64,000 nucleotides of DNA, taken from the sequence record NC_027399.1. One strand, given 5' to 3'. Made by a program: the position numbers and the translations under genes. The notes beneath the pieces are model-generated. The model was not told the DNA's origin. It saw only the letters and a program-made list of their open reading frames with translations, and did no database searches. How positions within the stretch are numbered: the stretch's first letter is position 1; each line of letters opens with the position of its first letter. Shown piece after piece: positions 1 to 64,000 of this stretch.

Positions 1-18
1 TATAAAATTTGATATAAT

Positions 19-46
19 AAAAGCCTCCCTTCGTGGAGGCTTTTTT
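19..46 (+). terminator. Intrinsic terminator
   Basis: AAAAGCCTCC-CTTCGT-GGAGGC-TTTTTTT hairpin plus T-run. Confidence 0.85.
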
Positions 47-72
47 CGTTCTTTTTTAATTTAAATTGAGTC

Positions 73-101
73 TTGACAAATAATACATTTTTATGTATAA
101 T
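73..101 (+). promoter_or_regulatory. sigma70 promoter
   Basis: TTGACA-17bp-TATAAT, perfect consensus. Confidence 0.9.
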
Positions 102-136
102 AATCCTAATAATTAGAAAAGTATCAGGTGTGATTT

Positions 137-721
137 ATGTTAAGTACTTTTAAGCGAGTTTATTTAAGAAACAACAAAATGCAAGTTCGTTTACACAAAG
201 ACGAAGCTGATTCGTTTATGGCTAAAGCTATTGTTAAATCTGAATTGTACAAACGCCTTTCACCAAAAGAAAGCTCGCCATATGGATTTAATCACCCACA
301 CAGCCATTATGTTGGATTGGTGTGTGAACACGCTGCTTATGTGTTGTTCACGGAACTGGAAGAAATGACTGGCATCAAATACGATATCGATCCAGCATTC
401 CAGAATAGTAAAAGAGATGGTGAATGTGATTTAATTGTTAACAATCTACGTATAGAAGTGAAGGGTATTAAGTACAAATCATGGACTAATTATGGTCCGT
501 GTATCAGTACAAGACAATTAAAGAATATTGAGAAAAAAGCAGATATCATTCTGTGGGTTTTGTATAATGAAAAACGTCATGAATTTTCGTTTGAAGGTTT
601 TAATTATGTAAAAGATGTACATACTGTACCAGTTAAAATTACTGGTGCTAAAGGTAAACCACAAATTAAAAATCATCCAGTTATTGATATTATTAAACCA
701 TTACAGGAATTACCAATATGA
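137..721 (+). CDS. PD-(D/E)XK restriction-endonuclease-like protein
   Basis: GLVCEHA helix, then DGECDLIV...RIEVKG: E...D...ExK motif order. Confidence 0.6.
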   Translation: MLSTFKRVYLRNNKMQVRLHKDEADSFMAKAIVKSELYKRLSPKESSPYGFNHPHSHYVGLVCEHAAYVLFTELEEMTGIKYDIDPAFQNSKRDGECDLIVNNLRIEVKGIKYKSWTNYGPCISTRQLKNIEKKADIILWVLYNEKRHEFSFEGFNYVKDVHTVPVKITGAKGKPQIKNHPVIDIIKPLQELPI

Positions 722-975
722 TCAAATGTAATATCGTAGTGTATAATTATGAGATTAATTCACGCGATGGAAGTGAAGAATTAGTGAATTCATATTTAGA
801 ATATGTAGTTAATTTTCCAGTACTGCCAGCGATTGGTTCTGAATTGAAAATTTATACATACAATGAAAAAGTATATGTAGTACTGGATATTGAATACAGA
901 ACACGTATTATGGACTGTCATAATGTTGACAATCCAAGTACTATGGAAATTAATATCATTGTTAAGGAAGTATAA
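718..975 (+). CDS. Hypothetical protein
   Basis: ATGA overlap with upstream gene; LPAIGSEL motif resembles next ORF (LPRTGEL). Confidence 0.75.
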   Translation: MIKCNIVVYNYEINSRDGSEELVNSYLEYVVNFPVLPAIGSELKIYTYNEKVYVVLDIEYRTRIMDCHNVDNPSTMEINIIVKEV

Positions 976-1217
976 TGAACCAACAATACATGATTAAAGT
1001 GGTTTTGTACAAAAATGATAATCAGAGAACTAAAATCTGTTCTTCTTATGTTCAGTCATTACCAAGAACCGGAGAACTTATTACAGTACTTAATGATAAA
1101 TTCATTGTTGAACAGATTGAACACACACTGTATCCAATTAGTACAACCGATACTGTTTCGTGGAATATGAATCAACATTCTGAATCTGGTATTGCTATTA
1201 TTTGTACAAAAACATAA
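975..1217 (+). CDS. Hypothetical protein
   Basis: TAATG coupling; probable paralog of 718..975. Confidence 0.75.
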   Translation: MNQQYMIKVVLYKNDNQRTKICSSYVQSLPRTGELITVLNDKFIVEQIEHTLYPISTTDTVSWNMNQHSESGIAIICTKT

Positions 1218-1227
1218 GGTACCACAT

Positions 1228-1674
1228 ATGATGTATTTTATATTTCTGTACTTAATATGTCACCTTGTTATTGTTACTATTATGGACAGACATTCACACT
1301 TTGGATATAGTTATAAAGTTGCTAAGATTTATGGTTTTAAATCTTATTTTGTTGCACTATTTTATAGTTATATACTCGATCCAAAGTATATGATATTGTC
1401 TCTTATACTACAAAAAGAAGCAAACATTGATACTATTTCTAAAATAGAATTCGTATGTAGGCGATTTCTTAATTCAGATGATAAATGTTCAGTTAAATTT
1501 CATTCGGATAAAGTTATTTTTGTATATAACAATGTATTCACTTGTGGTATTGAATTAAATCAGGTATTAGGTATAGTTGATATTTCATGGAATCATAACG
1601 TCATTATGCATCCAAGAACTATCAAGCTAATAGAAGCATGTAAAATAAAAGTTGACAGCGACACAAAGAGATGA
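1228..1674 (+). CDS. Hypothetical membrane protein
   Basis: ATG after AAGGT; hydrophobic N-terminus. Confidence 0.7.
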   Translation: MMYFIFLYLICHLVIVTIMDRHSHFGYSYKVAKIYGFKSYFVALFYSYILDPKYMILSLILQKEANIDTISKIEFVCRRFLNSDDKCSVKFHSDKVIFVYNNVFTCGIELNQVLGIVDISWNHNVIMHPRTIKLIEACKIKVDSDTKR

Positions 1675-1710
1675 TATTATATAGAATAAACACATATTAA
1701 AGAGGTGTAT

Positions 1711-2178
1711 ATGGATGCTTTAGCTACTCTATTCAAACTGAATACTTCAGAAAAAGAAGGTTATTTGAGTATCAGTGATCTTGAAAATACAAGTGAATAT
1801 ATTTTCAAAAATACAATCAAAATTAAAGCTAATAAGGATAAAAGCAATACACATTTCACAAAATGGATTGCTTATTGGGAGGGTGTTAATTTCGCAGTTG
1901 AAATGACAGTTCTACCAAAAGTATTAAGTACCGGATTTGTTAAAGTTGTTATTATTGATAAAAATCTTCGACCAATTTCAGAAATTGGTGAATACCCGGT
2001 TAAGGGTACTAAAGTTTTTGGTACCATGATCAATAATAAGTTCATGATCGAAAAAACAAAAACTCAATACATCAATCAGGTTATTTCTGAATTCGAGAAC
2101 AAACCTAAACCAAAAACTAAAACTGAAACCAATGAAGAATATGTTAATAAAATTAAAGAAGCATGGGGATTGAAATAA
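1711..2178 (+). CDS. Hypothetical protein
   Basis: GAGGTG SD; promoter-like TTGACA..GATATT upstream. Confidence 0.8.
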   Translation: MDALATLFKLNTSEKEGYLSISDLENTSEYIFKNTIKIKANKDKSNTHFTKWIAYWEGVNFAVEMTVLPKVLSTGFVKVVIIDKNLRPISEIGEYPVKGTKVFGTMINNKFMIEKTKTQYINQVISEFENKPKPKTKTETNEEYVNKIKEAWGLK

Positions 2179-2627
2179 TGTTAACTTTAAAAAATCTAAA
2201 GTACTTAATTATGATTAGTATTATCCTATTCATCTCCAATGTACCTATGGATATTTTTAAATTTGGTGACACACGATTGGGTGCATTCATTGGTGTATAT
2301 AGTTTAATATTCTGCATCATAACATTTGTGGTTGCGTTTGTTATGTTCATTGAAGATATGTATGATGATAAAGACTTTTATTTCGAATTTCTCGGAAAAG
2401 ATAGCTATTCATTTATCTGGACATTCTCTATTTTACCAGCATTAATTTATGCATTCTTTATCGCAGAGAATGGTATCATTTATGGAGTTATGGGTATCTT
2501 CTTATTTCTCTTCTGGGAAAGAATCAGAACTATTCAAAACCGATATGCTCAAGAATATCGTGATGAAGAACTAAAAAATGAAGCAATGCGTAAGAACTAT
2601 CCACCCGAAGAGGTAGAAATTAAATGA
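2178..2627 (+). CDS. Hypothetical membrane protein
   Basis: TAATG coupling; about 4 hydrophobic segments. Confidence 0.8.
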   Translation: MLTLKNLKYLIMISIILFISNVPMDIFKFGDTRLGAFIGVYSLIFCIITFVVAFVMFIEDMYDDKDFYFEFLGKDSYSFIWTFSILPALIYAFFIAENGIIYGVMGIFLFLFWERIRTIQNRYAQEYRDEELKNEAMRKNYPPEEVEIK

Positions 2628-3052: not shown

Positions 3053-3122
3053 TCATTGACAAGTGTGCTTCACATGAGGTAATATCATTACCTCATTTTA
3101 ATTCAAAAGAAGGAATGCAACC

Positions 3123-3425
3123 ATGAAAGATATTCTCATTGCAGTTGATGGTAGTGCTAAAACAATATCAAAAGGTATGCGTCTCTCCGTAGCCAAAACC
3201 CTTAGTAATGTATGCCCTGATTCTAAAATTTTATTTTGTCAAATTACAGACAAAAATATTATCGAATTAGATATTGATTTATTCTTTAAGTATGATCATC
3301 TTTTGTGTGGCACAAAAGCAAATATTGATCTGATATATTTAATTGATGATTTTGATCATAAATTCCTTATCACAGATAACAGTAATATTGAAAGTTCTGA
3401 AAACCTCAATGTAGTACTTTACTAA
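3123..3425 (+). CDS. Hypothetical protein
   Basis: AAGGA SD, promoter upstream. Confidence 0.8.
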   Translation: MKDILIAVDGSAKTISKGMRLSVAKTLSNVCPDSKILFCQITDKNIIELDIDLFFKYDHLLCGTKANIDLIYLIDDFDHKFLITDNSNIESSENLNVVLY

Positions 3426-3445
3426 TCAACTGGAGATGTATTATA

Positions 3446-4473: not shown

Positions 4474-5373
4474 ATGAAAGAAGTTGATCTAAATGAACTA
4501 AGTGCTGAAATCATGGAAACATTATTTGATGAATCTGATATTGAGCAATCAAAAAATATTAAGAGTACAAAAGATAATAATATCAGTCTCAAACATCCAA
4601 CTGGTGTTACAAATGAAATGCTGTTAAATGAAATACATAATGGTATTAATGTAAAACAAAATCGTGAATTACTTATCCGTTATAATTATCCACTAGCAGT
4701 CAGTATTGCTAAACGTTGTAAATGTTATATTCCAGAAGAAGATAAAATTTCTTATGCAGTAGAGGGTCTTTTGAATTCAATTCATAATTTTGATGTTACA
4801 AAAGGTGTATTATTCAGTACTTATGCCAGTGCTTCCATTTACATGACAGTGATGAACATGAGTAATGAACATAATAATTTAGTTTATATCCCCCGCCATG
4901 TAAGTGTACATAATGTTAATATTCGTAAATTTGCAAATGAATACGAAAAGAAACACGGCAAAAAATGCAAACCTGAACTTATTTCAAAAGAACTCGGAAT
5001 TAATGTTGATACTGTTGAGTTGTGTTTGTCTTTCCAGGAAACCACATCTCTTGATACTCCAACTTCTGATGATAGTACTGCACTAATTGATACCATTGCC
5101 AGTGATTGTAACGTAGAACAAAATGACGTTGATAGTATTGTTCTGGAATTGATGAATGAACTAGAACCAAAAGAAAAGGAAATCCTTTCCAGAATTTATG
5201 GTTTGAATGGATATGCACCAGAAACCTATGATAGCTTGATTAGTACTGGATTTTATGATAAAAAGGGTAAACGTATTACTGTTCGCGGAACTTTACATTA
5301 CAAATTCAGTACTGCACTTGAGAAACTAAAGCGTTTGGTTCGTCTAAAAGGATTAACTGCCAAAGATGTTTAA
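4474..5373 (+). CDS. RNA polymerase sigma70-family factor (RpoD/RpoS-like regions 2-4)
   Basis: LLIRYNYPLAVSIAKR...EGLLNSIHNFD..KG..FSTYA (region 2), VYIPRHV, SLDTP (region 3), LEPKEKEILSRIYGL (region 4). Confidence 0.88.
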   Translation: MKEVDLNELSAEIMETLFDESDIEQSKNIKSTKDNNISLKHPTGVTNEMLLNEIHNGINVKQNRELLIRYNYPLAVSIAKRCKCYIPEEDKISYAVEGLLNSIHNFDVTKGVLFSTYASASIYMTVMNMSNEHNNLVYIPRHVSVHNVNIRKFANEYEKKHGKKCKPELISKELGINVDTVELCLSFQETTSLDTPTSDDSTALIDTIASDCNVEQNDVDSIVLELMNELEPKEKEILSRIYGLNGYAPETYDSLISTGFYDKKGKRITVRGTLHYKFSTALEKLKRLVRLKGLTAKDV

Positions 5374-16299: not shown

Positions 16300-16354
16300 T
16301 TAATAATTAAAGCCATTAAAAAAAGGTTGACTTCGGTCAGCCTTTTTGCTATTG

Positions 16355-16362
16355 TATAAATA
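16355..16362 (+). promoter_or_regulatory. T4-type late promoter
   Basis: TATAAATA 38 bp before the 564-aa ORF. Confidence 0.6.
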
Positions 16363-16399
16363 TACTCATAGGAATAGAATACTATAGAGGAATAATACA

Positions 16400-18094
16400 A
16401 TGCCTGGTCAATTCACTGACAAAAATGGCGGTAACATGGCAGGTCACAGCGACAAGTGGTCTGATAAGAACCGCCGCCCAAATTCATATCAAGCAGGTCA
16501 AGGTTCAAGAGGTTCACGAAATCAAGGTACTGGCCTGGCTGGTAAAGCAAATACTGTATCAAGCGATGAAGTAGATACTTCTAAAATGAATCCAGAAGAA
16601 AAGTTGCGTTATTTTAATAAACTTGGACTTCTTAATCCAACACAAAAACAGCAACTTGCTGATATTGATGCTAAAAAAGCAAAATCAAGTACTGCAAATG
16701 TTGAACCAGTACATAAACCTAGTACTGAACAACCTAAACCAGATGTTAATCCAGTAAAAGAATTATCTGATAAATTAGGTAAAATTTTCGCTAATAAACC
16801 ACAATTAATTCAAGGTATCGTGAAAGCATTACAATCTGTGCCGAAAGAACAATTAAAAGATAAAGCACAAGCTGTACTGAAAGCTATGAATAACAATACC
16901 AGTACTGAACCAACTGAAGTATTCAGTACTGTAATGCAAGCAATTGAAGGTTCTCCTGAAAAGGATGAAGATGATATTGATTTCGATGAAAAAGAACCAG
17001 TTAAATCTGAACCAGAAGAAGGTTCTATTGACTGGATTCGTAAAATACATAAGTTTGTTTTTGATAAGTATTTTAATCAAGATTTTGATAGTTATAAATC
17101 TTATAGGGATTTACTAAAAAATAAACACGATGCTAATATTTTTCAGGATTATCTTGAAAAAATGGAAAAAAATCCAAAAATAAAACCATTGTATGATCTA
17201 GCTATGAATAAATTAAATGACTTCGATCCAGAAGAAGGTGAAGATTCTAAATTCATTAACATTGGTGACGCAGTATTCAGTATCATCAAAGATGGTGAAA
17301 ATGTACAGCAAAGTGCCGGTACTGAAGAAAGTGATAAGTACGCTCAAGACTATGAAAGAGAAGAAGAAAAAAGTCGTGATCTAGAACGTCAGTACAGTAC
17401 TATGTCAGAGAATGATTTTAGAAAAGATTTTCATTTCTTAGATAGTAAAGATGTAGAAGCATTAATTAAACAAGCTAAGCAATTCAAAAATTATCAATCA
17501 GCACTATCAGCTATTGCTTCTGGTGTTGATAATAGTACAGATGGTGATAACAATGAAATTCTTTCTTCCATGTATGCTATCGCTGATGATTTAGGTAGTA
17601 TGGGATTTGAATTGAAAGATAACGATAACAGTACTTCAGATAATAATGAATATGGTTTTGTTATGTCTCCAGAAGAATTATCATCTACTGGAAAACATAG
17701 TTATAATAATGATCCAGAAGTATATCAACAGCCAACATTGGATGATGCCTTAGTACTTGCACGTAAACATGCAGCGGCTGCACGTAAAGAAGATTTTGAT
17801 AAATTCTTGAAATATGTAGCTGATGGTATGAAAGAACAGGGTACTAAACCAGCAATTATTAACAGAACTCTTAGTCATTATATGCATGAACTAAAAAATA
17901 ATGGTTTTAAATTTCAATCTGCACTAAATTCTATGGTAGATAATGCCGAGGCTTATGATCCAGATGATGATTATGGTACTGAATTTGACCACAACATAGC
18001 TTCATTTGAAGGTGGGATGGAAAACTATGATAAAGATCAATCAAAATATGAAGATCAAATAATTCACGTTTACAATCAATTACACGGAAAATAA
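16400..18094 (+). CDS. Large acidic hypothetical protein (564 aa), possibly virion-internal
   Basis: GAGGA SD; disordered G/S/N-rich N-terminus, D/E-rich body. Confidence 0.9.
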   Translation: MPGQFTDKNGGNMAGHSDKWSDKNRRPNSYQAGQGSRGSRNQGTGLAGKANTVSSDEVDTSKMNPEEKLRYFNKLGLLNPTQKQQLADIDAKKAKSSTANVEPVHKPSTEQPKPDVNPVKELSDKLGKIFANKPQLIQGIVKALQSVPKEQLKDKAQAVLKAMNNNTSTEPTEVFSTVMQAIEGSPEKDEDDIDFDEKEPVKSEPEEGSIDWIRKIHKFVFDKYFNQDFDSYKSYRDLLKNKHDANIFQDYLEKMEKNPKIKPLYDLAMNKLNDFDPEEGEDSKFINIGDAVFSIIKDGENVQQSAGTEESDKYAQDYEREEEKSRDLERQYSTMSENDFRKDFHFLDSKDVEALIKQAKQFKNYQSALSAIASGVDNSTDGDNNEILSSMYAIADDLGSMGFELKDNDNSTSDNNEYGFVMSPEELSSTGKHSYNNDPEVYQQPTLDDALVLARKHAAAARKEDFDKFLKYVADGMKEQGTKPAIINRTLSHYMHELKNNGFKFQSALNSMVDNAEAYDPDDDYGTEFDHNIASFEGGMENYDKDQSKYEDQIIHVYNQLHGK

Positions 18095-18636: not shown

Positions 18637-19165
18637 ATGATCGTATCTGTACAGCCATTTGTGAATGGAACTTTTGTTCTTAAAATTGAAAGTGGATACA
18701 AAATGGGTCAATTCGTTAGTAAACCAAAGGTTAAAGATACTGATATCGAATTTCCAGAAACATTCGGCACTGAAGCGTCTGCATTAAAATGGGCAATTGA
18801 AACTGGATATCAAATTTTCAAATACCATGATGAAGTTCTTCCTGCTGNATGATTATAAAATCTTACACGCTGCCTTACAAAAAATCATGGAAGGCGAACG
18901 TAATGAAGATTATGGCATTTGTTATAATCTACAATCTAAAGTACTAAACTATATTGAAAAACGATTCATTTATCAATTCCTTCAAGAATCACTAAAAAGT
19001 ATTCTTGGTGGTAAATGTGGTCAATATCCAATTGAAGGGTCGTATGAAGATTTCAAACGAAACAATGAAAAATGGAATACATTTACTGAATTCGGATTTA
19101 AGCGTTTAAATCTACTTAAATCAATGATTGAGCGTACTGAAAAACTTTCTTTGGGAGAAAAATAA
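18637..19165 (+). CDS. Hypothetical protein, probably one gene split at the N (18848)
   Basis: 18637 frame ends at the ambiguous base and 18797 frame continues with DYKILHAALQK, paralogous to 24247 ORF. Confidence 0.55.
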
Positions 19166-24598: not shown

Positions 24599-25279
24599 AT
24601 GGTTAAATTATTAAAAACATTAGTTCTTATTACAATATTTTATATTCCATTTGCATTTGGTGATATTAATTGCAGTGATAAGTTTCTTAATTCAACTATA
24701 CCTGATGTTAAATACGATCAACAAGTTTGTTATACTAAATTTGCAGTACTATACAATTACAATTATAAAATCCCAATGGTGAGTGCTGAATACTTAACGC
24801 CAGATGATATCAACGCATCAAGTAAATTGAAGAGAAAAGATGCATTCCATTCAGATAAATCCATTCCACCAGAATTTAATCAAACCGTGGCTATGTATAA
24901 AGGCACTGGATATGATAAAGGTCACATGACACCAGCAGGTGATATGGATAATGCTTTTGATCAATCAGAAAGTTTTAGCTTAGCAAATATGACTCCACAG
25001 ACTAAAAAGTTAAATGAAATAGTATGGAGAGGAATTGAAGAAAAAGTACGAAATTCTATATTATCTGATGGTGCCGCCTATGTTATTACTGGTAGTATAG
25101 TTCAGAATGGTTCAAATAGACTTAATACTATTGTCATACCAGATTATATCTATAAAGCAGTATACTTTGTTAATACAAAAAAATCCATTGTATATGTAGC
25201 AAAAAATGATAATTCAGGTGCAGAAGAGGAATTATCAGAAAAGGATTTTGAAGTGAAATATAAAATTAAACTTTTTTAA
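24599..25279 (+). CDS. Secreted DNA/RNA non-specific endonuclease (NucA/EndA, beta-beta-alpha-Me)
   Basis: Signal peptide; YDKGHMTPAGD, FSLANMTPQ, LN..VW..IE motifs. Confidence 0.93.
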   Translation: MVKLLKTLVLITIFYIPFAFGDINCSDKFLNSTIPDVKYDQQVCYTKFAVLYNYNYKIPMVSAEYLTPDDINASSKLKRKDAFHSDKSIPPEFNQTVAMYKGTGYDKGHMTPAGDMDNAFDQSESFSLANMTPQTKKLNEIVWRGIEEKVRNSILSDGAAYVITGSIVQNGSNRLNTIVIPDYIYKAVYFVNTKKSIVYVAKNDNSGAEEELSEKDFEVKYKIKLF

Positions 25280-25345: not shown

Positions 25346-25789
25346 ATGACTCGTATTAATTTAGTACATGTTAAAGAACTCGCTGATCAACATTTGATGG
25401 CTGAATACAGAGAACTTCCTCGTGTGTTTGGTGCAGTTCGTAAACATGTACAAGATGGCAAACGTGTTTCTGATTTCAAAATCAACCGTACTTACATCTT
25501 AGGTACAGGACATGTGACATTCTTCTATAACAAATTATTGTACTTGCAGAAGCGTCACATTGATATTGTAAATGAATGTTTACGCCGTGGAATGAAGATT
25601 CAAAACACCGACATAAACGACCTCAGTGGTATTCCTACAGCTTTCTGTAATGATTATAACCCATTACCTCATGAGATCGATGTATCTCGTTCCAGATTGA
25701 TTGAGAAGATTCAGATGAAGCCTACCTGGTATAAGTTTACCAATGTGGAGTTTCCATCTTATTATATTACTATGTTGGATAAGTACTAA
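25346..25789 (+). CDS. denV: Pyrimidine-dimer DNA glycosylase / endonuclease V
   Basis: MTRINL...[24 protein letters not shown]...GHVTFFY, near-identical to T4 DenV. Confidence 0.97.
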
Positions 25790-38026: not shown

Positions 38027-38454
38027 ACTATATTGGACGATATGGTCATTATAGTAGACAATTTAATGGATATAGGTGATTCAGTACTGATAATAATGAA
38101 TATAAATGAATAAGAATGATTCTGAATGATTAAGTACTATTAAGAATGATTAAGTACTATTCAGTACTGATATGCCACTAAGTCCGTTTATAAAGTCGCA
38201 CCCAGTGGGCTACATTTGTAACTATTCAGTACTGAATAGTTCAATTCATCAACTATTTCAAATCTAATTACCCCATTAACTAAATCCCCAAATTATATAT
38301 TAACAAAAATCTGAATAGCATGTCAAGAAAAATCTGGATTACCAACGAGAAAAAATCTGGATTTTAAAAATTTTGAAATGTCGTTTATAGTTCAGGAAAA
38401 AAATGAAATTATAACAAGAAAATTGTTGACACGTATATGATGCCATTATATAAT

Positions 38455-39584: not shown

Positions 39585-39678
39585 AATTCACCCGGGTAGA
39601 TTTATCTTTACTGTAAAAGTACTTGCATAATTCTTTCAGTACTGCTATTATATATTCATACCAAACAGGAGAACTACC

Positions 39679-40141: not shown

Positions 40142-40214
40142 TAGTTCAGTAAAGGGAATCAGTACTGATTCCCTGTTTAGTACTGAAATTATAAGGGGAG
40201 TTAATTAATTCCCC

Positions 40215-40345
40215 TTTACAAATCTTTACAAAAGAATTGTTGACATAGTATCCCAGTACTGGTATTATGTATTCATAGACAGAACAAGTCTTTGGCCCAC
40301 AGGGTGCGGAGGAGTATCTATTAAATGAGAATGATAATCATTTAC
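40215..40345 (+). ncRNA. Gene-less promoter element (CCC..GGGTG family) ending in Fur box
   Basis: CpxR-type box 40215..40229; TTGACA-17-TATTAT; AGAC-AGAACAA-GTCT hairpin; GCCCACAGGGTGCGGAGGAGTATCTAT; Fur box 40327..40345. Confidence 0.65.
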
Positions 40346-40837: not shown

Positions 40838-40956
40838 AAAGTTTTAAAGAGTACTTGACAACATAATTCAGTACTGTATAATGTATTGCATAGAAAGGAG
40901 ATTCCAGAATAATGGAATCTCCGATAAAACAAACTATCAGTGAAGGAGTAATTGCC

Positions 40957-41568
40957 ATGAATGTTATCGATACCATCTATTCTAAATCTTTTATCGAACT
41001 GAATGAAGAGCAGAAAGAAAAAGCAATCGATGTTATGCGGGAACTGGATCGCCATGATTCAGATCCATTCTGGGCACAATTAATTAATGAAGATAAACAA
41101 GAATTAATGAATAATGAATATGGTTTTACTGATGCTGTAATTCATTATAGCGGCTTTTGCTCACAAGGTGACGGGGCGTCAATTAGTACTGAATCAATCG
41201 ACGCTGAGACGTTTTTACGCAAAATTAAAGCATGGTCGAAATTCCGTGTATTGCATAAACATTTCAATGATGGTACTATTACATTAAAGATCGAACGCAA
41301 CGATCATCGTTATTCGCATGAAAATACTGTTTCTGGTGTGGTGGATTTGGATTATTATACTGAATTCACTGCTAAACAAGAAGAGAAAGCGGAAGAGCTG
41401 GAGACGCTTTTGACTGAAACTATCCGTGATCTTTCACGTCAACATTACCAGGAGTTAAGCGACGAAAACGATTATCAAAATAGTGATGAAGCATTGATTG
41501 AATCGATTAATGCAAATGATTATAATTTCAAAGTTAACAGTACTGGTAACGTATTGGGGTTAGCGTAA
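40957..41568 (+). CDS. Early hypothetical protein
   Basis: AAGGAG SD; YSGFCSQGDGASI motif. Confidence 0.85.
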   Translation: MNVIDTIYSKSFIELNEEQKEKAIDVMRELDRHDSDPFWAQLINEDKQELMNNEYGFTDAVIHYSGFCSQGDGASISTESIDAETFLRKIKAWSKFRVLHKHFNDGTITLKIERNDHRYSHENTVSGVVDLDYYTEFTAKQEEKAEELETLLTETIRDLSRQHYQELSDENDYQNSDEALIESINANDYNFKVNSTGNVLGLA

Positions 41569-42376: not shown

Positions 42377-42462
42377 GTATTTGACAATTCGATCCAGTAC
42401 TGTATAATGTATTACACCAAAGGGGATACATAGTGTATCCCTGATATAAAGGAGTAGCGACT

Positions 42463-44003: not shown

Positions 44004-44504
44004 ATGGCTAAACTGAATTCTGTTGTTGTTGCTCTGATCGCTGGTGATATCGCTGCTCTGAATGCTTCTTTCGCGTCGGTATCGATGGAAGATATGAAAA
44101 CTGTTCGTAACAACTTTAACGATTTTTACTCTAAATTCAAAGCTGCAAATGAAGCGGCGGAAGCGGCTGCAAAAGAGCGTAAAGCACAGATCGAAACCGA
44201 AACGAAAGAACTGGTAGACGCCCTGGTAACTGCTGGCCTGGATCTGGAAATGGCCGCCGAAGTCGCCAGCCAGAAAATGGCGGTGAAATATCCCGAACTG
44301 GCTCCGAAGTCGGGAACTGGTAAAACCTGGTCGTTTGAAACCGTATTCGTTAACGTTGACGGTGAAAAACTGGAAATTGGCACCAAAGGCAACAAAGGCA
44401 GTATGAAAGCACTGGCGGCGGCACGCGAAGCAATTGCCGCTGGCAAATACAAAGATCGTGCTGAATGGATCGCCGCTCACGCCTGGACTGAAACCGAAGC
44501 GTAA
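44004..44504 (+). CDS. H-NS/MvaT-like nucleoid-associated protein (putative)
   Basis: Ala/Glu-rich coiled coil ending ALVTAGLD (H-NS MLIADGID); KY...GTGKTWS (H-NS KY...GETKTWTG); GEKLEIGTKGN (MvaT GEVIETKGGN); highly expressed codon bias; AAGGTG SD. Confidence 0.55.
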   Translation: MAKLNSVVVALIAGDIAALNASFASVSMEDMKTVRNNFNDFYSKFKAANEAAEAAAKERKAQIETETKELVDALVTAGLDLEMAAEVASQKMAVKYPELAPKSGTGKTWSFETVFVNVDGEKLEIGTKGNKGSMKALAAAREAIAAGKYKDRAEWIAAHAWTETEA

Positions 44505-44740: not shown

Positions 44741-45111
44741 CCAAACGAAACCACCAGCAAAGGCAGATCCCATTATTTGATTTAGTTAGTACTGCAATGA
44801 ATTAGTTTAATCGCACTACAAAGCAATCAATCCCTTTTGTAATAGCTCATAGAACGCAATAAGACGCGTTTAAATGACTTCCCTATGTAATGCCATTCCT
44901 TTTTAATAAGTCCTCTTAAAACGCGTTACAGTTCGTTATACGGCGTTTAATAATACTCATCATTTCTTTTTCAAAAAGTACTTGCATTAATGATCCAGTA
45001 CTGCAATAATGTACTCACTGAAACGCAGTAAGTAAATGCAAATAAGTACTTGACAAAGTGTTGTAGTACTGGCATAATGAATACATCAAAACGATTAAGG
45101 AGAAACACCAA

Positions 45112-48004: not shown

Positions 48005-48253
48005 ATGTCTAGTATCGTTATCAATGAAACCTTATTATCTGTTACTTATGACAATGACAGTGTTTTTCCGGGTAAAGATTATGGGGACGAAATTCCCGTA
48101 AAAGTTGAACTCGATCAGAGTGTCGGTAATTCCGATGATATTAAACGCACTATGGTAGTTAAAATCGGTCATATTACTTTATTGCCCGGTGATATTGATT
48201 ATATCAAAAGCATGATTGATCGTGCAAATATCATCGCCAATACTTTTAAATAA
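48005..48253 (+). CDS. Early hypothetical protein
   Basis: Promoter-stem-loop-AGGAG. Confidence 0.8.
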   Translation: MSSIVINETLLSVTYDNDSVFPGKDYGDEIPVKVELDQSVGNSDDIKRTMVVKIGHITLLPGDIDYIKSMIDRANIIANTFK

Positions 48254-48346
48254 GTACTTGACAACTGATTTCAGTACTGTATAATGTATTACATAGAAAA
48301 GAGATTCCAGTACTGGAATCTCTAAGATAACCCCAGGAGATTAAAA

Positions 48347-51388: not shown

Positions 51389-51651
51389 TGATTCAGTACT
51401 GATATAATGTATTAAATTAACAGGAGGAATTATCTTAAATGAATAAACGTCAATTGATGATTGATGCATCTCGTTTCCGTTCAAAAGAAGAAAAGAAAAG
51501 TTGCATTAAATGGGTTTTGTCAACTTTCATTATTGGATTACTTATTGTTGCTTTTGTTTATAGTTAGTACTTGACAATATAATCCAGTACTGTATAATGT
51601 TTATCAAAGGGAATGAATTATTCATTCCCGATTAATCAAAGGAGTTTTGCC

Positions 51652-51876: not shown

Positions 51877-52174
51877 AAACGTTTGACAACTGATTTCAGT
51901 ACTGTATAATGTTTATCAAAGGGAATGAATTATTCATTCCCGATTAATCAAAGGGGTTTATCATGAAAGAGTATATCTTTGAAGTAACTTTCACCTTTGG
52001 CCCGCACCAACTGATCCGGTCTTCTGGCTACAACCGCGAACAAGCATTCAGCAACCTTCGCCGTATGTACCCCAATGTCGTGACCTGGGTCAAGTGTGAA
52101 GAAGCATAAAATAATTAGTCAGTACTATTGACAACGCGTGATAGTACTGCTATAATTATTTTAACTTATACGGA

Positions 52175-52426: not shown

Positions 52427-52713
52427 TCGGGAGTACTGTTAATGTATATGCCAATTATCATACCGTTAGCAGTACTGTTAATCGCCGCCGTTATCTGCGA
52501 ACAATATCATTTGTTAGGAATGTAAACTATGATTCAATGTGAATTGTCAGTACTGATCACGCTGTTCTATATGTTGGGGCAAAAGAAACAAGATATTTCT
52601 GGTGATAATGCATTATTGTATCAATCATTAGACCAATGGCAACGATCTGAATTAAGCAATGCATGGGCGAAAGGTTACAACGATAGTACTGCAAAATAAT
52701 TTAAAAAAAGGGG

Positions 52714-52801
52714 TTGACTTACGCCAGCCCTTTTGTTATCATTAGTACATAGCAAGAACAATGCTCAAGCCCACAGGGTGCCGAAGTGTATCTATAGTTT
52801 A
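52714..52801 (+). ncRNA. Gene-less promoter element (CCC..GGGTG family)
   Basis: TTGACT-17-TATCAT; AGCA-AGAACAA-TGCT; GCCCACAGGGTGCCGAAGTGTATCTATAGTTTA. Confidence 0.7.
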
Positions 52802-52886: not shown

Positions 52887-53153
52887 ATGGCCTATCATAC
52901 ACCACATAGACACTTCATTGATAAACGCGGTATGGCTTTTAAAGCAATGAGTGACAATCGTAACACACAAATGTACTTTAAAGATATGACATTAGAAGAA
53001 GCAATTGAAGCCGTAAGGAATGATCGTAAGCTTTCCAAGAAAGTTGCATCAGTACTTAATGCTTTTTGGTTTGAACGTACTACCAACAAAGAATACAAAG
53101 AAAAGATGATTGCACTTGGTAAAGTAGTAAGAGAAGAAAAATTATATCTTTAA
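52887..53153 (+). CDS. Early hypothetical protein
   Basis: AGGAGG SD. Confidence 0.8.
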   Translation: MAYHTPHRHFIDKRGMAFKAMSDNRNTQMYFKDMTLEEAIEAVRNDRKLSKKVASVLNAFWFERTTNKEYKEKMIALGKVVREEKLYL

Positions 53154-53435
53154 GTACTTGACTATGTGATTCAGTACTGTATACTGTACTTATACCAAAC
53201 AAAAGCAAAGGGAATCAGTACTGATTCCCTGTAAAGGAGATAGACCAAATGAAACAAGCAAAATTTAATTCAGAAATTAAAGCAGCAAAAGCACACAAAG
53301 TACAGTTAGCAGTACTGGCTATCGTATCAATCTTTTTGCTGTGCAACATCGGCTAAAATAATTATCACAGTACTATTGACAACCAACGATAGTACTGGTA
53401 TAATTAGTTTACCAAATCAAAAAGGAGTAACTAAA

Positions 53436-54533: not shown

Positions 54534-54641
54534 GACCTGATTATTACAGTACTAACAAAGGGGCTTCAAAGCCCCTTTAAACGTCCTGTAAGCCATTCTA
54601 AGAGGTTTTACATGAAAAAGGTACAACTACACAAAGGAGTA

Positions 54642-54860
54642 ATGAAAGTTCATTATAATGCCCCGCAACGCATTATAGATAGAGCCATTGAACTAGCCAA
54701 TCAATATCTAGCTGGTGGATTAACTCCCAGGAAGTTAAGCAACGGGAAGTTATATGTAATCAACGTTGATACTAATAATCGTATAGTAATCAAAGGTGAA
54801 AGCATATCACTGTATGAACATCAACAGTATAACAAGAAAGTAAAAAATATTAGTAGATAA
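54642..54860 (+). CDS. Small basic protein, possibly RelE/ParE-like fold
   Basis: AAGGAG SD; RKL...I.V..NNRIV...HQQYN pattern. Confidence 0.45.
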   Translation: MKVHYNAPQRIIDRAIELANQYLAGGLTPRKLSNGKLYVINVDTNNRIVIKGESISLYEHQQYNKKVKNISR

Positions 54861-55362: not shown

Positions 55363-55389
55363 AAATAAACATAATAAACAAAAAAGGGG

Positions 55390-55472
55390 TTGACACAGGT
55401 CAGCCCTTTTGCTATTATTAATATCAAGAAAACAAGCTAACCCACAGGGTGCATAAATGTATCTATAGTTTA
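55390..55472 (+). ncRNA. Gene-less promoter element (CCC..GGGTG family)
   Basis: TTGACA-17-TATTAT; AACCCACAGGGTGCATAAATGTATCTATAGTTTA. Confidence 0.7.
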
Positions 55473-56630: not shown

Positions 56631-56879
56631 GTGACTATGAATACTAAAGAAATGCTTTGTGAGTTCGCCAGTAACAATCTTGGTAACGCCGCTTTCATTG
56701 ATGGTTTTAATTATGTAGCAACTCGTGATCAAGAAGGTAAAGTATTCGTTAAAGATCGTATGGGCTTTTCTATCCAGGTTCAATCTGGTACTGCAAGCCA
56801 TATNGATNGTNNGAANGNNTGGNNNNGNTNCTATCCCCGGNGATGGAACATATCATTTCCGTATCGTAAAATAATTTAA
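56631..56879 (+). CDS. Early hypothetical protein (3' end unreliable, many Ns)
   Basis: AAGGAG SD. Confidence 0.6.
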   Translation: MTMNTKEMLCEFASNNLGNAAFIDGFNYVATRDQEGKVFVKDRMGFSIQVQSGTASHXDXXXXWXXXYPRXWNISFPYRKII

Positions 56880-56973
56880 AAAGTNCTGGACAATACAATC
56901 CAGTACTGTATAATGTTTTGCATACACAAGAGATTCCAGTNCTGGAATCTNTAATNTAAAGGAGAATACCAAA

Positions 56974-57255
56974 ATGATTAACGGCACTCTGATTAANTAT
57001 GCAAAACGCCGCGATGTAGAAATAGAAGTACTGAAAGCAGGCGAAGTTGACGATGACGCTCAGGTATGGTTCTACACCGCAGACAATGACTGTGAACCAG
57101 TACTGATGTACCTGATTAATAATGATGGTTCTCTTACTTATCGTAGCAAACTGATGAAGTCACTGGAAGATATGCCAGCACATATCAATAATAAAGAAGT
57201 ACTGAAACGCGTAATCTGCTACATCTCAGACCAGCACAAAGCGGATATGATGTAA
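56974..57255 (+). CDS. Early hypothetical protein
   Basis: AAGGAG SD. Confidence 0.8.
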   Translation: MINGTLIXYAKRRDVEIEVLKAGEVDDDAQVWFYTADNDCEPVLMYLINNDGSLTYRSKLMKSLEDMPAHINNKEVLKRVICYISDQHKADMM

Positions 57256-61452: not shown

Positions 61453-61726
61453 ATACTATTCAGTACTGAATATACAGGAAGTATGCAACGAATTATACTT
61501 CACTCCTTATACAGAAGTATTGCGTTCTGTACTACAATCACTACAGAAGGAATTCAATGCAAAGTACAAAGGAACGCCAGTGCGAACAAAAAACAATGAA
61601 TTTGTCTATGAGACTGTAATTGATCATTATATTATATCGTTCATTGATTGTGTGTTCAAAACTGATGATATTGGATGGAACAGATATTTTGATGAAACTG
61701 TTATGATCATTGGGGATAAAAAATGA
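61439..61726 (+). CDS. Hypothetical protein (MTK.EY family)
   Basis: Paralog of 61723 and 63737. Confidence 0.8.
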   Translation: MTKIEYYSVLNIQEVCNELYFTPYTEVLRSVLQSLQKEFNAKYKGTPVRTKNNEFVYETVIDHYIISFIDCVFKTDDIGWNRYFDETVMIIGDKK

Positions 61727-62004
61727 CTAAAGATGAATATAAATCTGTTTCTATTATTAGAAAAATGTGTGATTCTTTTTACAGAAATACAGAATACGGT
61801 ACTGCTATGCGTTCAGTACTGAATACGTTATCAAAAGATTTTACTCATAAGTATCATGGCCGAAAGATAAAAATTAATACTATTAATGCAGAATATTACA
61901 CAAAAATTAAAAAGTACAAGATTACATTAGGTGAATGTGATTTTCGTACTAACACTGGAATTAATGGTTCATTTTTTGGTGATTATGTGACGCTATGTGA
62001 TTAA
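61723..62004 (+). CDS. Hypothetical protein (MTK.EY family)
   Basis: ATGA overlap. Confidence 0.8.
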   Translation: MTKDEYKSVSIIRKMCDSFYRNTEYGTAMRSVLNTLSKDFTHKYHGRKIKINTINAEYYTKIKKYKITLGECDFRTNTGINGSFFGDYVTLCD

Positions 62005-62074
62005 AAATGTTTTTTTACTTACCATGTTAGTACATCGATAAAACAACCATGATATTTAATATAAAGGAAACGTT

Positions 62075-62329
62075 ATGAAACAAATTTTTAAAACCATCTG
62101 GAATTCACTGTTTAGTAAAAATACCAGTAATGTCGTTGATACTGTTGATAGTACTGTTACTACAAATACACAAAGTACATACATTCCGGTATATAGCGAT
62201 GAAAATCCATTCTATACAGAAGAAGAGAAGAAACAATGGATTGAGGATGAGATTCGTTTACGCAAAGAAGAAGCAGAGCGTATGAAACTTGAAAAAAGTA
62301 ATAAGAAATGCAACCAATGCAACAAATAA
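62075..62329 (+). CDS. Hypothetical protein
   Basis: AAGGA SD. Confidence 0.75.
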   Translation: MKQIFKTIWNSLFSKNTSNVVDTVDSTVTTNTQSTYIPVYSDENPFYTEEEKKQWIEDEIRLRKEEAERMKLEKSNKKCNQCNK

Positions 62330-62490
62330 ATTCTGACTATTATTACAGTACTGTACAGTACAATATGTATTTAAGTTCTTTTATGAATTTAAAAACGAGT
62401 TCAATAGACAAAGACGTATATGAAAGTATATTGGGTTGTTTGAATCATAGTATTCATAAATTATATAAATTAAAAGGTACGTTGGGATGA
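62308..62490 (+). CDS. Small hypothetical protein (right-end family)
   Basis: Ends IHKLYKLKGTL. Confidence 0.6.
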   Translation: MQPMQQINSDYYYSTVQYNMYLSSFMNLKTSSIDKDVYESILGCLNHSIHKLYKLKGTLG

Positions 62491-62669
62491 TTGATAATTA
62501 CCAACAAATAAAAATACTATCTGAGTATTATAAAATTGATACTAATTATATAGTACGGATGCCTGTAGAGTTGGATGAATCTTTACATAAGTGGAGATAT
62601 TTTTCAGTATTAAATAATTTGAATTTTGTCATTAATAGTTTATATGAATTACAAGGTAAATTACCATGA
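62487..62669 (+). CDS. Small hypothetical protein (right-end family)
   Basis: Ends INSLYELQGKLP. Confidence 0.7.
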   Translation: MIDNYQQIKILSEYYKIDTNYIVRMPVELDESLHKWRYFSVLNNLNFVINSLYELQGKLP

Positions 62670-63013
62670 AATATAAACGATGTGATGATGGATATCTGGC
62701 TGCCAGGTATTACAGTAAATTTGTATCTACAACTAACAAAGATGATTTGTTATTGCTTATGTTAGTAGGTACAATTAAACAAGAAATGGCGGTGGAAAGA
62801 TATATCAACACGTTAATACATAAAATGGTACTGAAACACAGGCTGGTTAAGATCAGGACTATTGGTGGTTATGAACCTTATAAATTTGGTGTATTTTATC
62901 TTGACAATACTAAATTAGCTGCTGCTGATTCTATTATAATTTGTGAGTCCATTGAAAAAGCAGTTCAGTACTGTAAAAATAATAATTATAGATTGATTGG
63001 TACAGAGGTATGA
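62666..63013 (+). CDS. Hypothetical protein (right-end family)
   Basis: QEMAVERYINTLIHK. Confidence 0.75.
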   Translation: MKYKRCDDGYLAARYYSKFVSTTNKDDLLLLMLVGTIKQEMAVERYINTLIHKMVLKHRLVKIRTIGGYEPYKFGVFYLDNTKLAAADSIIICESIEKAVQYCKNNNYRLIGTEV

Positions 63014-63016
63014 ATT

Positions 63017-63259
63017 ATGATGAGTTTAAAATTTTATGACCATTTACCAAAAAGTATTAAATTCAGTAATATACAATATTATACATTAGAAGATTGGGAA
63101 ATGCATTATCGAAAGATACTCGGTTTTTCTTTGGGATTTGAAGAAACTGAGTACCAGGAAATACATTATAATTATTATATTGAAATATTAAAATGTATGA
63201 TACATAAAGATTATGAAATTTTAATTTCCAGATATATAGTGACGAGTAAAAATGGATAA
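63017..63259 (+). CDS. Hypothetical protein (right-end family)
   Basis: QEIHYNYYIEILK. Confidence 0.7.
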   Translation: MMSLKFYDHLPKSIKFSNIQYYTLEDWEMHYRKILGFSLGFEETEYQEIHYNYYIEILKCMIHKDYEILISRYIVTSKNG

Positions 63260-63415
63260 AGAAACAAAGAAGAAATTAACTGAACTTATTGAAGCATCTA
63301 TTAATGCTGAGGGTGCTTTCTTTGAACACTACGATAAGTATGATAAAAAAGGACGAGTATTGTGGGAGAAGCGTAATAGTACCAGGAAGGAGTTGGATGA
63401 ATTTATTTCTAAATT

Positions 63416-63634
63416 GTGAGGAAATTAGTGAATAGTCCAAATGGTCGTGCATCTATATCCCAACTATATTTGTATAATCTTAAATTATCTTATATTATAA
63501 AATCAATAAAAACTCAAAATAACTTCATTGGTTTGCCTAATTATGTAAGAGAAATGGAGATAGATTCATTTGTTAAGGATATGATAGAAATATATAAAAT
63601 TCAAGGTAAGTTACCACCGTTTGATGCGTTGTAA
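63416..63634 (+). CDS. Small hypothetical protein (right-end family)
   Basis: Ends IEIYKIQGKLP; start uncertain. Confidence 0.6.
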   Translation: MRKLVNSPNGRASISQLYLYNLKLSYIIKSIKTQNNFIGLPNYVREMEIDSFVKDMIEIYKIQGKLPPFDAL

Positions 63635-63736
63635 TACTATTCACTTCATCCCCACCGTGTGTCTTTTTTAAACACTTGACTTCCAGTCAAATCTGTGTTA
63701 TTGTTATCATTGTAATAATAAAAATGGTACAATATA

Positions 63737-64000
63737 ATGACCAAAAGTGAATACTATTCTGTACTGAATATTCAGGAAGCGTGCAAAGGTTTATACTTTA
63801 CTCCTTATACTGAAGTTATGCGTTCTGTGTTACACTCATTACAGATGGAATTTAATGCAAAGTACAAAGGGACACCCATTTCCATAAAATGTTATAATGA
63901 AGATTTTGGTGTTTTAATTAATAGTTATAGTATAACATTTATTGTTTGTTATTTTGAAACATCGGGTTCTATAGCAGTGACAAGAAAATATTTTGATTCT
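63737..64000 (+). CDS. Partial hypothetical protein (MTK.EY family), runs off window
   Basis: MTKSEYYSVLNIQEACKGLYFTPYTEV, close paralog of 61439. Confidence 0.8.
   Translation, partial: MTKSEYYSVLNIQEACKGLYFTPYTEVMRSVLHSLQMEFNAKYKGTPISIKCYNEDFGVLINSYSITFIVCYFETSGSIAVTRKYFDS

Follow-up and report, generated by a model that had tools for sequence, protein, structure and literature searches.

Why would a lytic phage fill its chromosome with one restriction-type site? Phages are textbook avoiders of short palindromes, yet a whole clade of 350-kb phages does the opposite with the hexamer AGTACT, and the 64,000-nucleotide stretch of DNA analysed here (the window) is crowded with this word. Sequence comparison placed the window, at 100% identity, at positions 186001-250000 of NC_027399.1 (AB897757.1), the 346,602-bp genome of Klebsiella phage K64-1, a RaK2-like jumbo myovirus of the genus Alcyoneusvirus. 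The window has a G+C content of 32.4%, and nearly all of its genes are small and lie on the + strand. We propose that AGTACT is a clade-specific genome-signature site in double-stranded DNA, read by a phage-encoded, two-fold symmetric, sequence-specific DNA-binding protein, a reading to which we give a probability of about 35%.

The window (1-64000) contains 293 copies of AGTACT, 107 of them as the 8-mer CAGTACTG, as its share of 940 copies in the whole genome (346.6 kb). Dinucleotide-preserving shuffles of the window gave 15.2 +/- 3.7 copies (maximum 24) and base composition predicts 21.5, while for the genome a dinucleotide model predicts 78.8, or 64.8 when the motif is masked. The 8-mer occurs 242 times genome-wide against 3.0 expected (0.55 expected in the window), and the longer form TTCAGTACTGAA is present 12 times in the window against 0.01 expected. 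A first-pass annotation of the window had described AGTACT as hyper-iterated in coding and non-coding DNA, with at least 12 copies in the first 5 kb and a higher density from 38 to 58 kb. The count of 293 against 15-21 expected bears this out; the first 5 kb hold exactly 12 copies, and 150 copies lie between 38181 and 58574 (7.4/kb) as compared to 143 in the remainder of the window (3.3/kb). The same annotation put the enrichment at about an order of magnitude, which was right in kind and slightly low in size: the 6-mer is in fact enriched 14-19x and the 8-mer 80-200x. Every 10-kb bin of the genome is enriched (13-36 copies against 2-3 expected), including bins of structural genes on either strand, with a peak of 52-71 copies per bin at 220-250 kb of the record. 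The deposited window sequence includes 20 ambiguous bases (N), at 18848 and 56804-56997, of which 19 fall within ~200 bp in the right part of the dense zone. Two of these probably break further AGTACT copies (AGTNCT at ~56940 and AAGTNC at ~56880), and the true site count is therefore slightly above the figure given.

Of the 940 copies in the genome, 399-853 are expected under Markov models of orders 3-4. These orders soak up the signal rather than explain the excess, because the 5-mers AGTAC and GTACT are themselves almost wholly products of the motif. No other 6-bp palindrome exceeded twice its expectation in the window. Several are scarce there (CTTAAG 0 against 15-21 expected, ACTAGT 1, TCTAGA 2, TAGCTA 4) or have zero copies (CTGCAG, CAGCTG, GAGCTC, GGATCC, GCATGC and TGGCCA), and CGTACG is missing from the entire K64-1 genome (0 against 11.5 expected). 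With so many other palindromes missing, K64-1 otherwise follows the usual palindrome avoidance of phages; as an account of AGTACT, restriction-site avoidance fails, since under-representation is the opposite of the trend seen.

We then asked whether the excess could arise from the encoded proteins. Within genes of the window the 180 copies of AGTACT are distributed over all three frames, 90 as AGT-ACT (Ser-Thr), 75 as xxA-GTA-CTx (Val-Leu) and 15 as xAG-TAC-Txx (Lys/Gln/Glu-Tyr), compared to 42 +/- 6 (maximum 59) after synonymous-codon shuffling and 21 +/- 4 after shuffling of codon order. Genome-wide, observed copies and those in synonymous shuffles were 421/131, 85/12.6 and 255/59.5 in the respective frames, so that all frames stand 3-7x above the shuffles. 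Outside the dense zone, density is 2.4/kb in coding and 3.0/kb in non-coding DNA, and is flat along genes. The synonymous and codon-order shuffles, along with the equal density in non-coding DNA, rule out a codon or dipeptide artefact, in line with the earlier statement that use of all reading frames speaks against one; the excess survives correction for amino-acid and dinucleotide composition. The proteome instead bears the imprint of the word. Ser-Thr dipeptides number 865 against 488 expected while the reverse Thr-Ser (498) is at expectation, and Val-Leu dipeptides number 800 against 507 expected while Leu-Val (461) is likewise at expectation.

Comparison with RaK2 (~97% identical) showed that the sites are held. 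Divergence inside sites was 1.5% (17/1134) as against 3.06% elsewhere (p = 6e-4), and 175 of 189 aligned sites were intact. Losses (14) and gains (11) were similar in number, and substitutions fell at all positions, with C>T at the cytosine not dominant. At a greater distance, orthologous structural genes with 40-70% protein identity carried nearly the same site totals in K64-1 as in GAP32 (36 vs 35) and CBB (30 vs 33). Of the K64-1 sites, 3 (of 36) and 2 (of 30) shared their position between genera, where chance would give 0.09 and 0.07, a 30-40x excess. Equal density with few coinciding positions indicates that density is kept through turnover, and AGTACT thus behaves as a distributed genomic signal, such as Chi or the cyanobacterial highly iterated palindrome HIP1, and not as a set of individual regulatory sites. 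The first-pass annotation had held that positive selection was implied, and the halved divergence within sites, the sharing between genera, the density maintained despite turnover and the distorted dipeptide usage all agree with it: selection holds AGTACT in place, strongly enough to alter protein sequences. Such selection would maintain about one site per 350-430 bp along the whole chromosome.

Turnover could also be read without any function, if a neutral, lineage-specific bias of mutation or repair (very-short-patch-like or methyl-directed) kept creating AGTACT, and the copies in promoters described below were inherited from duplicated cassettes. The near-complete positional turnover between genera at constant density, and gains that roughly equal losses between K64-1 and RaK2, are as such a drive would have them, and a repair-drive model has been proposed for HIP1 (PMC4390886). 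However, directional repair should deplete near-cognate words, and only AGGACT/AGTCCT, a transversion neighbour, is down (0.53x) while transition neighbours stand at 1.4-3.9x. Sites conserved above background and shared between genera well above chance, altered amino-acid sequences and over-even spacing also speak against neutrality, as does the invariance of AGTACT at one promoter position in two genera where nearby spacer bases vary. Comparable evidence for HIP1 has been taken as favouring selection (PMC5861425). We therefore consider a neutral origin quite improbable. Very-short-patch-type repair, or decay of 5-methylcytosine, was rejected as the driving process, as deamination neighbours are not depleted and C>T is not dominant.

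The distribution of the motif among phages narrows the question further. AGTACT is enriched 9-18x in four genera, Alcyoneusvirus, Asteriusvirus, Mimasvirus and Eneladusvirus, at a density kept at about 2.3-3/kb. Observed and expected counts were 200 and 11 in RaK2 (Alcyoneusvirus); 143 and 16 at 30-80 kb, and 161 and 8.8 in the terminal 26 kb, of the E. coli phage G17 (Asteriusvirus); 64 and 7.2 in GAP32, 57 and 6.5 in CBB, and 72 and 6.8 in XbC2, whose deposited host is Xanthomonas (all Mimasvirus); and 71 and 5.6 in Serratia phage BF (Eneladusvirus). Relatives outside these genera gave 1 against 7.8 in Pseudomonas phage PA5oct (Wroclawvirus, 100001-125000), 3 against 3.4 in Agrobacterium phage Atu_ph07 (Polybotosvirus) and 224 against 204 in 49 pooled environmental relatives from IMG/VR with capsid proteins 60-65% identical, among which no hyper-iterated palindrome of any kind was found. 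The unrelated coliphages T2 (3 against 4.6) and alia, which is rV5-like (0 against 8.1; NC_052655.1, 91478-116452), and E. coli K-12 host DNA (3 against 4.8) also lack the excess, and the phage DNA is 40-120x richer in AGTACT than host DNA. Presence in the genera with enterobacterial hosts and absence from other relatives make the trait a derived character of the enterobacterial-host subclade, and the distribution, XbC2 included, points to a phage-encoded determinant. That alia and PA5oct avoid AGTACT suggests that their hosts exert real pressure through ScaI-type restriction, and against this background the K64-1 total of 940 stands out all the more.

The form of the site provides information on what might recognise it. 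The fuller consensus is H-AGTACT-D, with symmetric flank preferences: C(-1)/G(+1) is preferred at 50-56% in each reading frame (0, 1, 2) as well as outside genes, G(-1) and C(+1) almost never occur, and T-rich positions -2/-3 are mirrored by A-rich +2/+3, beyond which the flanks return to background composition. The left and right flanks vary independently. Flanks also drift by genus: Alcyoneusvirus and Asteriusvirus have C/G, and Mimasvirus, where the motif takes the form AAGTACTT, shows either A or C at -1 and either G or T at +1; the hexamer is invariant in all four genera, and G(-1)/C(+1) is disfavoured in every one. Dinucleotide bias or CpG deamination was dismissed as the source of the CA/TG flanks, as P(C|A) would give only 17% where 46-53% was observed; the K64-1 genome as a whole is depleted in CpG (rho = 0.74). 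Among words of the form NGTACN, those with both A..T flanks are enriched 14.5x, those with one AGTAC half 2.3-4.4x and those with neither 1.1-1.9x. This is close to multiplicative, as expected if two halves add independently to recognition by a symmetric dimer. Enrichment of single half-sites is what a dimer with additive binding energy predicts, and is less expected of an all-or-none enzyme site.

A majority of the sites (589 of 940) have no palindromic extension, and only 12 have arms of at least 5 nt (palindromes of at least 16 bp); only 20 pairs genome-wide are exactly 20 bp apart. These low numbers leave >90% of sites as free-standing singles without extended similarity. Single free-standing sites at 1-38180 of the window fall mostly within genes of the + strand, in any of the three frames, and show neither phasing nor an extended repeat around them. 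As similarity does not reach beyond the core word, a dispersed repeat, a miniature inverted-repeat or repetitive extragenic palindromic element, or another mobile element was excluded as the source. Outside the dense zone we found neither helical phasing nor cooperative arrays, only the 3-bp codon periodicity. Spacing is slightly over-even (coefficient of variation 0.90 against 1.00 +/- 0.04 for random placement), with a largest gap of 2.3 kb against 2.9 kb expected. A strand orientation like that of Chi or of the FtsK-orienting polar sequences (KOPS) is ruled out, as AGTACT reads identically on both strands and has symmetric flanks. A LexA box, which we take to be CTG-N10-CAG and which two sites 18 bp apart would form, was set aside, as only 3 such spacings occur in the window. 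The first-pass annotation's comparison with matS or parS, which act as few clustered sites, does not fit 940 evenly dispersed copies.

A palindrome of this kind might instead be the target of a phage orphan DNA methyltransferase or other base-modifying enzyme, as with HIP1, the modified site serving as a mark of self. The mark could protect from a phage or host nuclease or tell strand or DNA age, and early promoters would then sense parental as against newly replicated DNA by its modification state. Each cyanobacterial HIP co-occurs with a methylase for its core, and one-nucleotide deviants lie at outer positions in HIP, the same pattern as for AGTACT (PMC4390886). The hexamer is sharp and invariant in four genera while its flanks drift. 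If AGTACT-specific restriction is a real pressure, as the counts in alia and PA5oct indicate, a phage with 940 sites would need protection, and RaK2 DNA has been reported to resist many restriction enzymes (PMC3622015). An enzyme that could write such a mark is present: gp237, a C5-cytosine methylase encoded at 166664-167557 of the record, outside the window, has orthologs with 59-66% identity in all motif-rich genera.

The properties of gp237 do not suit this role, however. Its best solved relatives are the catalytic domains of DNMT3A/B, matched over the full length (E = 2e-22), while bacterial type II enzymes match at 1e-8 or worse (M.HaeIII 2.5e-8, M.HhaI 4e-6). Outside the clade, the most similar homolog (46% identity) comes from a phage that has no AGTACT at all; close homologs are also found in rV5/phi92-like coliphages and in ICP1. 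The authors of the RaK2 study reported CpG methylation of its DNA by bisulfite (PMC3622015), and AGTACT contains no CpG. The DNMT3-like sequence, the reported CpG methylation and the homolog in a zero-site phage make gp237 an unlikely writer, and we rejected it as such. The other annotated enzymes also fit poorly. The Mom-family protein gp190 was discarded as it is confined, within the clade, to Alcyoneusvirus, and the context of Mu Mom, S-A-S-N-Y, does not fit AGTACT. The Dam-like gp580 belongs to a family presumably GATC-specific, as it is usually annotated. Nor is there a signature of 5-methylcytosine deamination: AGTATT/AATACT stands at 1.37x, neither depleted nor specially enriched, and C>T is not dominant among losses. 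Finally, an all-or-none enzyme site does not predict single half-sites at 2-4x or symmetric flanks spanning 12 bp. We favour a DNA-binding protein over a modifying enzyme because half-sites act additively, because the symmetry of the flanks extends over 12 bp and because none of the annotated methylases fits well. The sharp, invariant hexamer and the HIP1 precedent of cognate methylases keep modification alive, as a possibility that we hold to be a minor one.

Of proteins that might bind such a site, one would be provided by the host. The hosts of the motif-rich phages encode the nucleoid-occlusion factor SlmA. Phage DNA could titrate or activate SlmA and so block division, or the sites could recruit another Enterobacterales factor. 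The SlmA-binding site, GTGAGTACTCAC, is a 12-bp palindrome with an AGTACT core (PMC3020112), and the two share T at half-site position 2; moreover, nearly all motif-rich phages infect Enterobacterales, and the Pseudomonas and Agrobacterium relatives lack the motif. Binding by SlmA, however, requires G1, T2, a purine at position 3, A4 and G5 (PMC3020112), of which the phage sites match only T2 and the core. Their commonest 3-nt flank is TTC, with T or A at position 1 and with C (46%), A (24%), T (23%) and G (7%) at position 3, and only 2 perfect GTRAGYRCTYAC and 9 one-mismatch sites occur in 346 kb. XbC2, a Mimasvirus deposited with a Xanthomonas host, is equally enriched, and unrelated enterobacterial phages are not enriched (T2) or avoid AGTACT (alia). 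A host protein of repressor type sitting in the spacer of phage early promoters at time zero would also harm the phage. Since the core matches and the essential flanks do not, we set SlmA aside as a poor fit for the reader, and a host-protein site of any kind appears very doubtful.

Further evidence on function comes from the dense zone, 38181-58574 (+ strand), which has 7.3-7.4 sites/kb overall and 12.5/kb in its non-coding DNA. Phage Muenster is 93-96% identical to K64-1 here and has a direct terminal repeat of 20,030 bp, as predicted by PhageTerm. Nucleotide 1 of Muenster aligns to window position 38181 and the end of its repeat to ~58574, and by homology the zone, which is the very stretch that the first-pass annotation had marked as denser, is thus likely to be a direct terminal repeat of ~20 kb and to carry the small early open reading frames that enter the cell first. 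The K64-1 record was deposited as circular; homology would place the physical left end near window position 38181 (record ~224,181). Terminal repeats are also annotated in the records of G17, CBB and fENko-Kae01.

We predicted sigma-70 promoters in this region from TTGACA and TATAAT hexamers 16-18 bp apart, upstream of an open reading frame with a ribosome-binding site. Between 38.3 and 58.3 kb, 12 promoters matched the consensus perfectly (12/12), 11 of them on the coding strand, and a further 11 matched at 11/12. In 19 of the 22 strongest + strand promoters AGTACT occupies one fixed position, the 3' end of the spacer, where it abuts the -10 hexamer and provides the TG characteristic of extended -10 elements (TTGACA-N9-CAGTACTG-TATAAT). 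A second copy, overlapping the first T of the -35 (AGTACtTGACA), is present in eight or nine of the 22, and several promoters are followed, 40-60 bp downstream, by a stem-loop centred on CAGTACTG and then by the ribosome-binding site. The terminal 26 kb of G17, which cannot be aligned to K64-1 at the DNA level, carry AGTACT at the identical spacer position in 16 of 26 strong promoters. The word is therefore invariant at this position in two genera, while the surrounding spacer bases have diverged. Promoters hidden at the sites do not account for the motif genome-wide, because outside the repeat no more than about 4 sites resemble complete promoters.

The predicted early promoters, all on the + strand, differ in the number and placement of their copies. 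Both copies are present, with 12/12 consensus, at 40850-40882 (AGTACtTGACA-N9-CAGTACTG-TATAAT) and 51566-51598, and also at 45045-45078 (TTGACA / TGG-CATAAT), beside which lies a second two-copy promoter at 44977. At 39618-39655 two copies 20 bp apart abut the -35 and the -10, respectively, and at 52121-52156 they are 22 bp apart (AGTACTATTGACA … AGTACTGC-TATAAT), a layout repeated at 53369-53404. A complete cassette, 48253-48332, comprises a two-copy promoter (12/12), a 24-bp palindromic stem-loop AGAGATTCCAGTACTGGAATCTCT at 48300-48323 built on a third copy, and a ribosome-binding site. A spacer copy alone is found in the 12/12 promoter at 42381-42408 (…CCAGTACTG-TATAAT) and in similar promoters starting at 40240, 43922, 46452, 47516, 47923, 51883, 52827, 54864, 56560 and 56887. 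The stem-loop AGGGAATCAGTACTGATTCCCT at 53209-53230, downstream of the promoter at 53153, is likewise centred on the motif, and analogous hairpins are centred at 40161, 42031, 45967, 49770 and 50337. The main strong promoters without AGTACT are two that are overlapped by a terminator-like hairpin (52707-52734 and 55383-55410), whose stem AAAGGGGTTGAC…GCCCTTTT holds the -35 of the next promoter; this overlapping design (GGGATTGACTCCGGTCAGTCCCTTT) occurs four times in the G17 terminal region.

These placements bear on the function suggested by the first-pass annotation, either a binding site for a phage protein (a global repressor, a nucleoid protein or a packaging protein) or a mark written by a phage methyltransferase. 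The fixed spacer position in two genera supports a repressor or operator role, whereas the methyltransferase mark is weakened by a C5 enzyme that is DNMT3-like, a Mom enzyme present in one genus and the missing deamination signature. We infer a reader that is a non-enzymatic, DNA-binding dimer. It would bind the spacer copies of the early promoters as operators, timing or shutting off early transcription, with the second copy that often abuts the -35 and another in the hairpin of the 5' untranslated region as possible further operators. Binding of the same reader genome-wide would mark, coat or organise phage DNA as 'self'.

A third type of explanation places the function in DNA transactions, AGTACT being a preferred site at which a phage enzyme cuts, nicks or loads on DNA. 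Candidates would be an endonuclease seeding recombination-dependent replication, a Chi-like signal for a Mre11/Rad50-type nuclease, a topoisomerase II site or a primase site, and a high density would speed replication, recombination or decatenation of the 346-kb genome. The distribution of sites, which is genome-wide, uniform, slightly over-even and independent of transcription units, suits this, and among the K64-1 gene products are recombination and replication proteins of T4 type, topoisomerase II and many endonucleases of the HNH or homing type. Three AGTACT copies (38133, 38153 and 38163) cluster in the direct repeat GAATGATTAAGTACTATT at 38133-38168, which ends 12 nt before the predicted genome end at 38181, and a 22-bp perfect palindrome, AACTATTCAGTACTGAATAGTT, is centred on the motif just inside that end (38220-38241, 40 nt after it). 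A recent preprint ties HIP1 to the efficiency of recombination (bioRxiv 10.1101/2024.09.10.611283). Such a hot spot, however, leaves the fixed position in early-promoter spacers unexplained, and the motif is missing from PA5oct, Atu_ph07 and the environmental contigs, relatives that share the core of replication, recombination and topoisomerase functions. A palindromic nick site would, in addition, yield double-strand breaks, and no candidate enzyme is tied to the site. We regard this explanation as unlikely.

A weak candidate among the phage proteins is gp430 (44004-44504, + strand), an H-NS/StpA-like early protein in the motif-dense repeat, which may be a reader or a counter-silencer. It has an H-NS N-terminal oligomerisation domain (PF22470, E = 4e-6) and a C-terminal segment resembling the H-NS DNA-binding loop, with GTKGNKG in place of TGQGRTP, and homologs are present in the terminal repeats of Alcyoneusvirus, Asteriusvirus and Eneladusvirus. 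It could relieve the silencing of a genome with 32% GC in a host with 57% GC. A sigma-70-family factor of the phage, gp304 (4474-5373, + strand), provides context, having homologs only in the motif-rich genera with enterobacterial hosts; to our knowledge, sigma factors do not read dispersed palindromes. A third gene of possible relevance encodes gp363 (24599-25279, + strand), a NucA-type DNA/RNA non-specific endonuclease (PF01223, E = 1e-36), which would matter only to a version of the model based on self-protection. It adjoins a DenV-like pyrimidine-dimer glycosylase (25346-25789).

Several observations weigh against a dedicated DNA-binding reader. We know of no H-NS-type domain that reads palindromes, and a gp430 homolog was not detected in Mimasvirus. 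The ~21 terminal-repeat proteins common to K64-1 and G17 have no recognisable DNA-binding domain in Pfam or PHROGs, and the same searches found none in the neighbours of the sigma factor or in the virion protein gp344. A Cro/Xre-type helix-turn-helix protein beside the sigma factor of CBB was dropped for want of a homolog in K64-1. A classical repressor would be titrated by the ~800 dispersed sites, and some of the promoter copies may owe their presence to shared ancestry among duplicated cassettes. The hexamer core is sharp, variants at positions 2-5 being enriched only 0.5-1.9x, and such a core, unchanged from genus to genus although its flanks drift, would also be in keeping with a recognition site of enzyme type. 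Every cyanobacterial HIP palindrome is accompanied by a cognate methylase (PMC4390886). To these may be added the small chance, mentioned above, that repair or mutation drive is the source of AGTACT.

The DNA-binding reader can be extended to a sequence-coded system of 'self', in which the density of one palindrome, and not a modified base, identifies the phage chromosome, and a dedicated reader has two jobs. It would nucleate on AGTACT and shield or organise the DNA, for example against the phage NucA-type nuclease or host H-NS silencing, and as it accumulated it would turn off early transcription via the copies in every early promoter of the first-injected repeat. Selection for the code would then reshape dipeptide usage across ~680 proteins. 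We offer this extension tentatively, and think it rather improbable in full.

Some further features of the genome were noted. A YeeU-like antitoxin homolog and a protein with a ParE/YafQ-like toxin domain (PF24732, E = 2e-10) are encoded in the terminal repeat, at 40912-41568 and 54612-54860, and both are conserved in G17. The stretch 16316-16991, in gp344 (16400-18094), is the sole part of window 16-24 kb with DNA conservation (73-77%) to E. coli Asteriusviruses; gp344 has no Pfam domain and is called a 'chromosome segregation protein' in one record. Outside the window, at 263.5-275 kb of the K64-1 record, ~20 adjacent genes for hypothetical proteins of 160-200 amino acids each look like a large tandem paralog family.

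Full-text searches of a literature library found no report of AGTACT or CAGTACTG enrichment, of the promoter-embedded copy or of ScaI digestion for these phages, and the RaK2 and CBB genome papers make no mention of AGTACT enrichment. The excess, borne at the cost of altered proteins by phages of Klebsiella, E. coli, Salmonella, Cronobacter, Pectobacterium, Serratia and Erwinia, implies a sequence-specific reader or writer acting on the entire phage chromosome and its early promoters. Identifying this reader or writer might uncover a novel means by which a virus distinguishes its DNA from that of the host or arranges a very large genome, and would explain early-gene timing in therapeutically relevant jumbo phages of Klebsiella and E. 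coli. The lytic E. coli K-12 phages 121Q and G17 are easy to work with and offer a tractable model for the 30-year-old HIP1 puzzle, and AGTACT density provides a simple diagnostic signature of the clade in metagenomes.

Among known systems, some resemble the promoter arrangement or the proposed mode of action. The promoter-early/stem-loop (PeSL) cassettes of T4-type phages, reportedly described by Arbiol et al. in 2010, are similar to the K64-1 repeat in that an early sigma-70 promoter, a stem-loop and a ribosome-binding site precede the small open reading frames of a hyperplastic region. PeSL cassettes, however, have no genome-wide iterated palindrome, whereas in K64-1 the palindrome lies in the promoter spacer and often at the centre of the stem-loop. 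TF1 of phage SPO1 is an abundant phage DNA-binding protein that recognises hydroxymethyluracil-containing DNA and has preferred sites at early promoters in the terminal redundancy. The likeness is functional and speculative, and lies in the logic of the proposed model, where a phage protein would tell phage from host DNA and have its strongest sites over terminal-repeat early promoters; TF1 reads hydroxymethyluracil DNA, while the K64-1 reader would read a short palindrome, and no homolog of TF1 or HU came to light in K64-1, though no search was directed at one. The stoperators of Cluster A mycobacteriophages are asymmetric, orientation-dependent 13-mers, present in ~24-36 copies in temperate phages and bound by a known repressor. 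They too are many copies of a short protein-binding site, inside and between genes and tied to promoter control, as is proposed for AGTACT, which unlike them is palindromic and has ~940 copies in a virulent jumbo phage.

Other systems resemble the word itself. In Chi, DNA uptake sequences and KOPS, density is similarly kept through positional turnover and word frequency marks self against foreign DNA, but these are asymmetric, strand-oriented words, unlike the palindromic AGTACT, which has no orientation. The SlmA-binding sites (SBS, GTGAGTACTCAC) of E. coli, Klebsiella and Vibrio have a central AGTACT (A4 G5 Y6) and 12-bp two-fold symmetry and are dispersed over the chromosome (PMC3020112). 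They differ in their essential G1 and purine-3, missing from the phage sites, whose position 3 tends to be C and is seldom G, and in number, there being ~50 per 4.6 Mb as against 940 AGTACT per 0.35 Mb, with only 2 canonical SBS in the phage. The closest parallel is HIP1, with the alternate HIPs (GCGATCGC), of cyanobacteria, and the first-pass annotation's analogy with it was apt. In both, a short perfect palindrome is hugely enriched (HIP1 15-300x, AGTACT 14x and its 8-mer 80-200x), lies both between genes and, within them, in every reading frame, is conserved above background with selection inferred, is lineage-specific and has one-nucleotide deviants at its outer positions (PMC5861425, PMC4390886). 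HIP1 resides on a cellular chromosome while AGTACT is found in a lytic Klebsiella phage genome; AGTACT is AT-rich with a 6-bp core, the conserved phage C5 enzyme looks CpG-type, and AGTACT is in addition placed exactly within early promoters and three times as dense in the terminal repeat. By this analogy, AGTACT is a phage counterpart of the cyanobacterial HIP1 palindrome.

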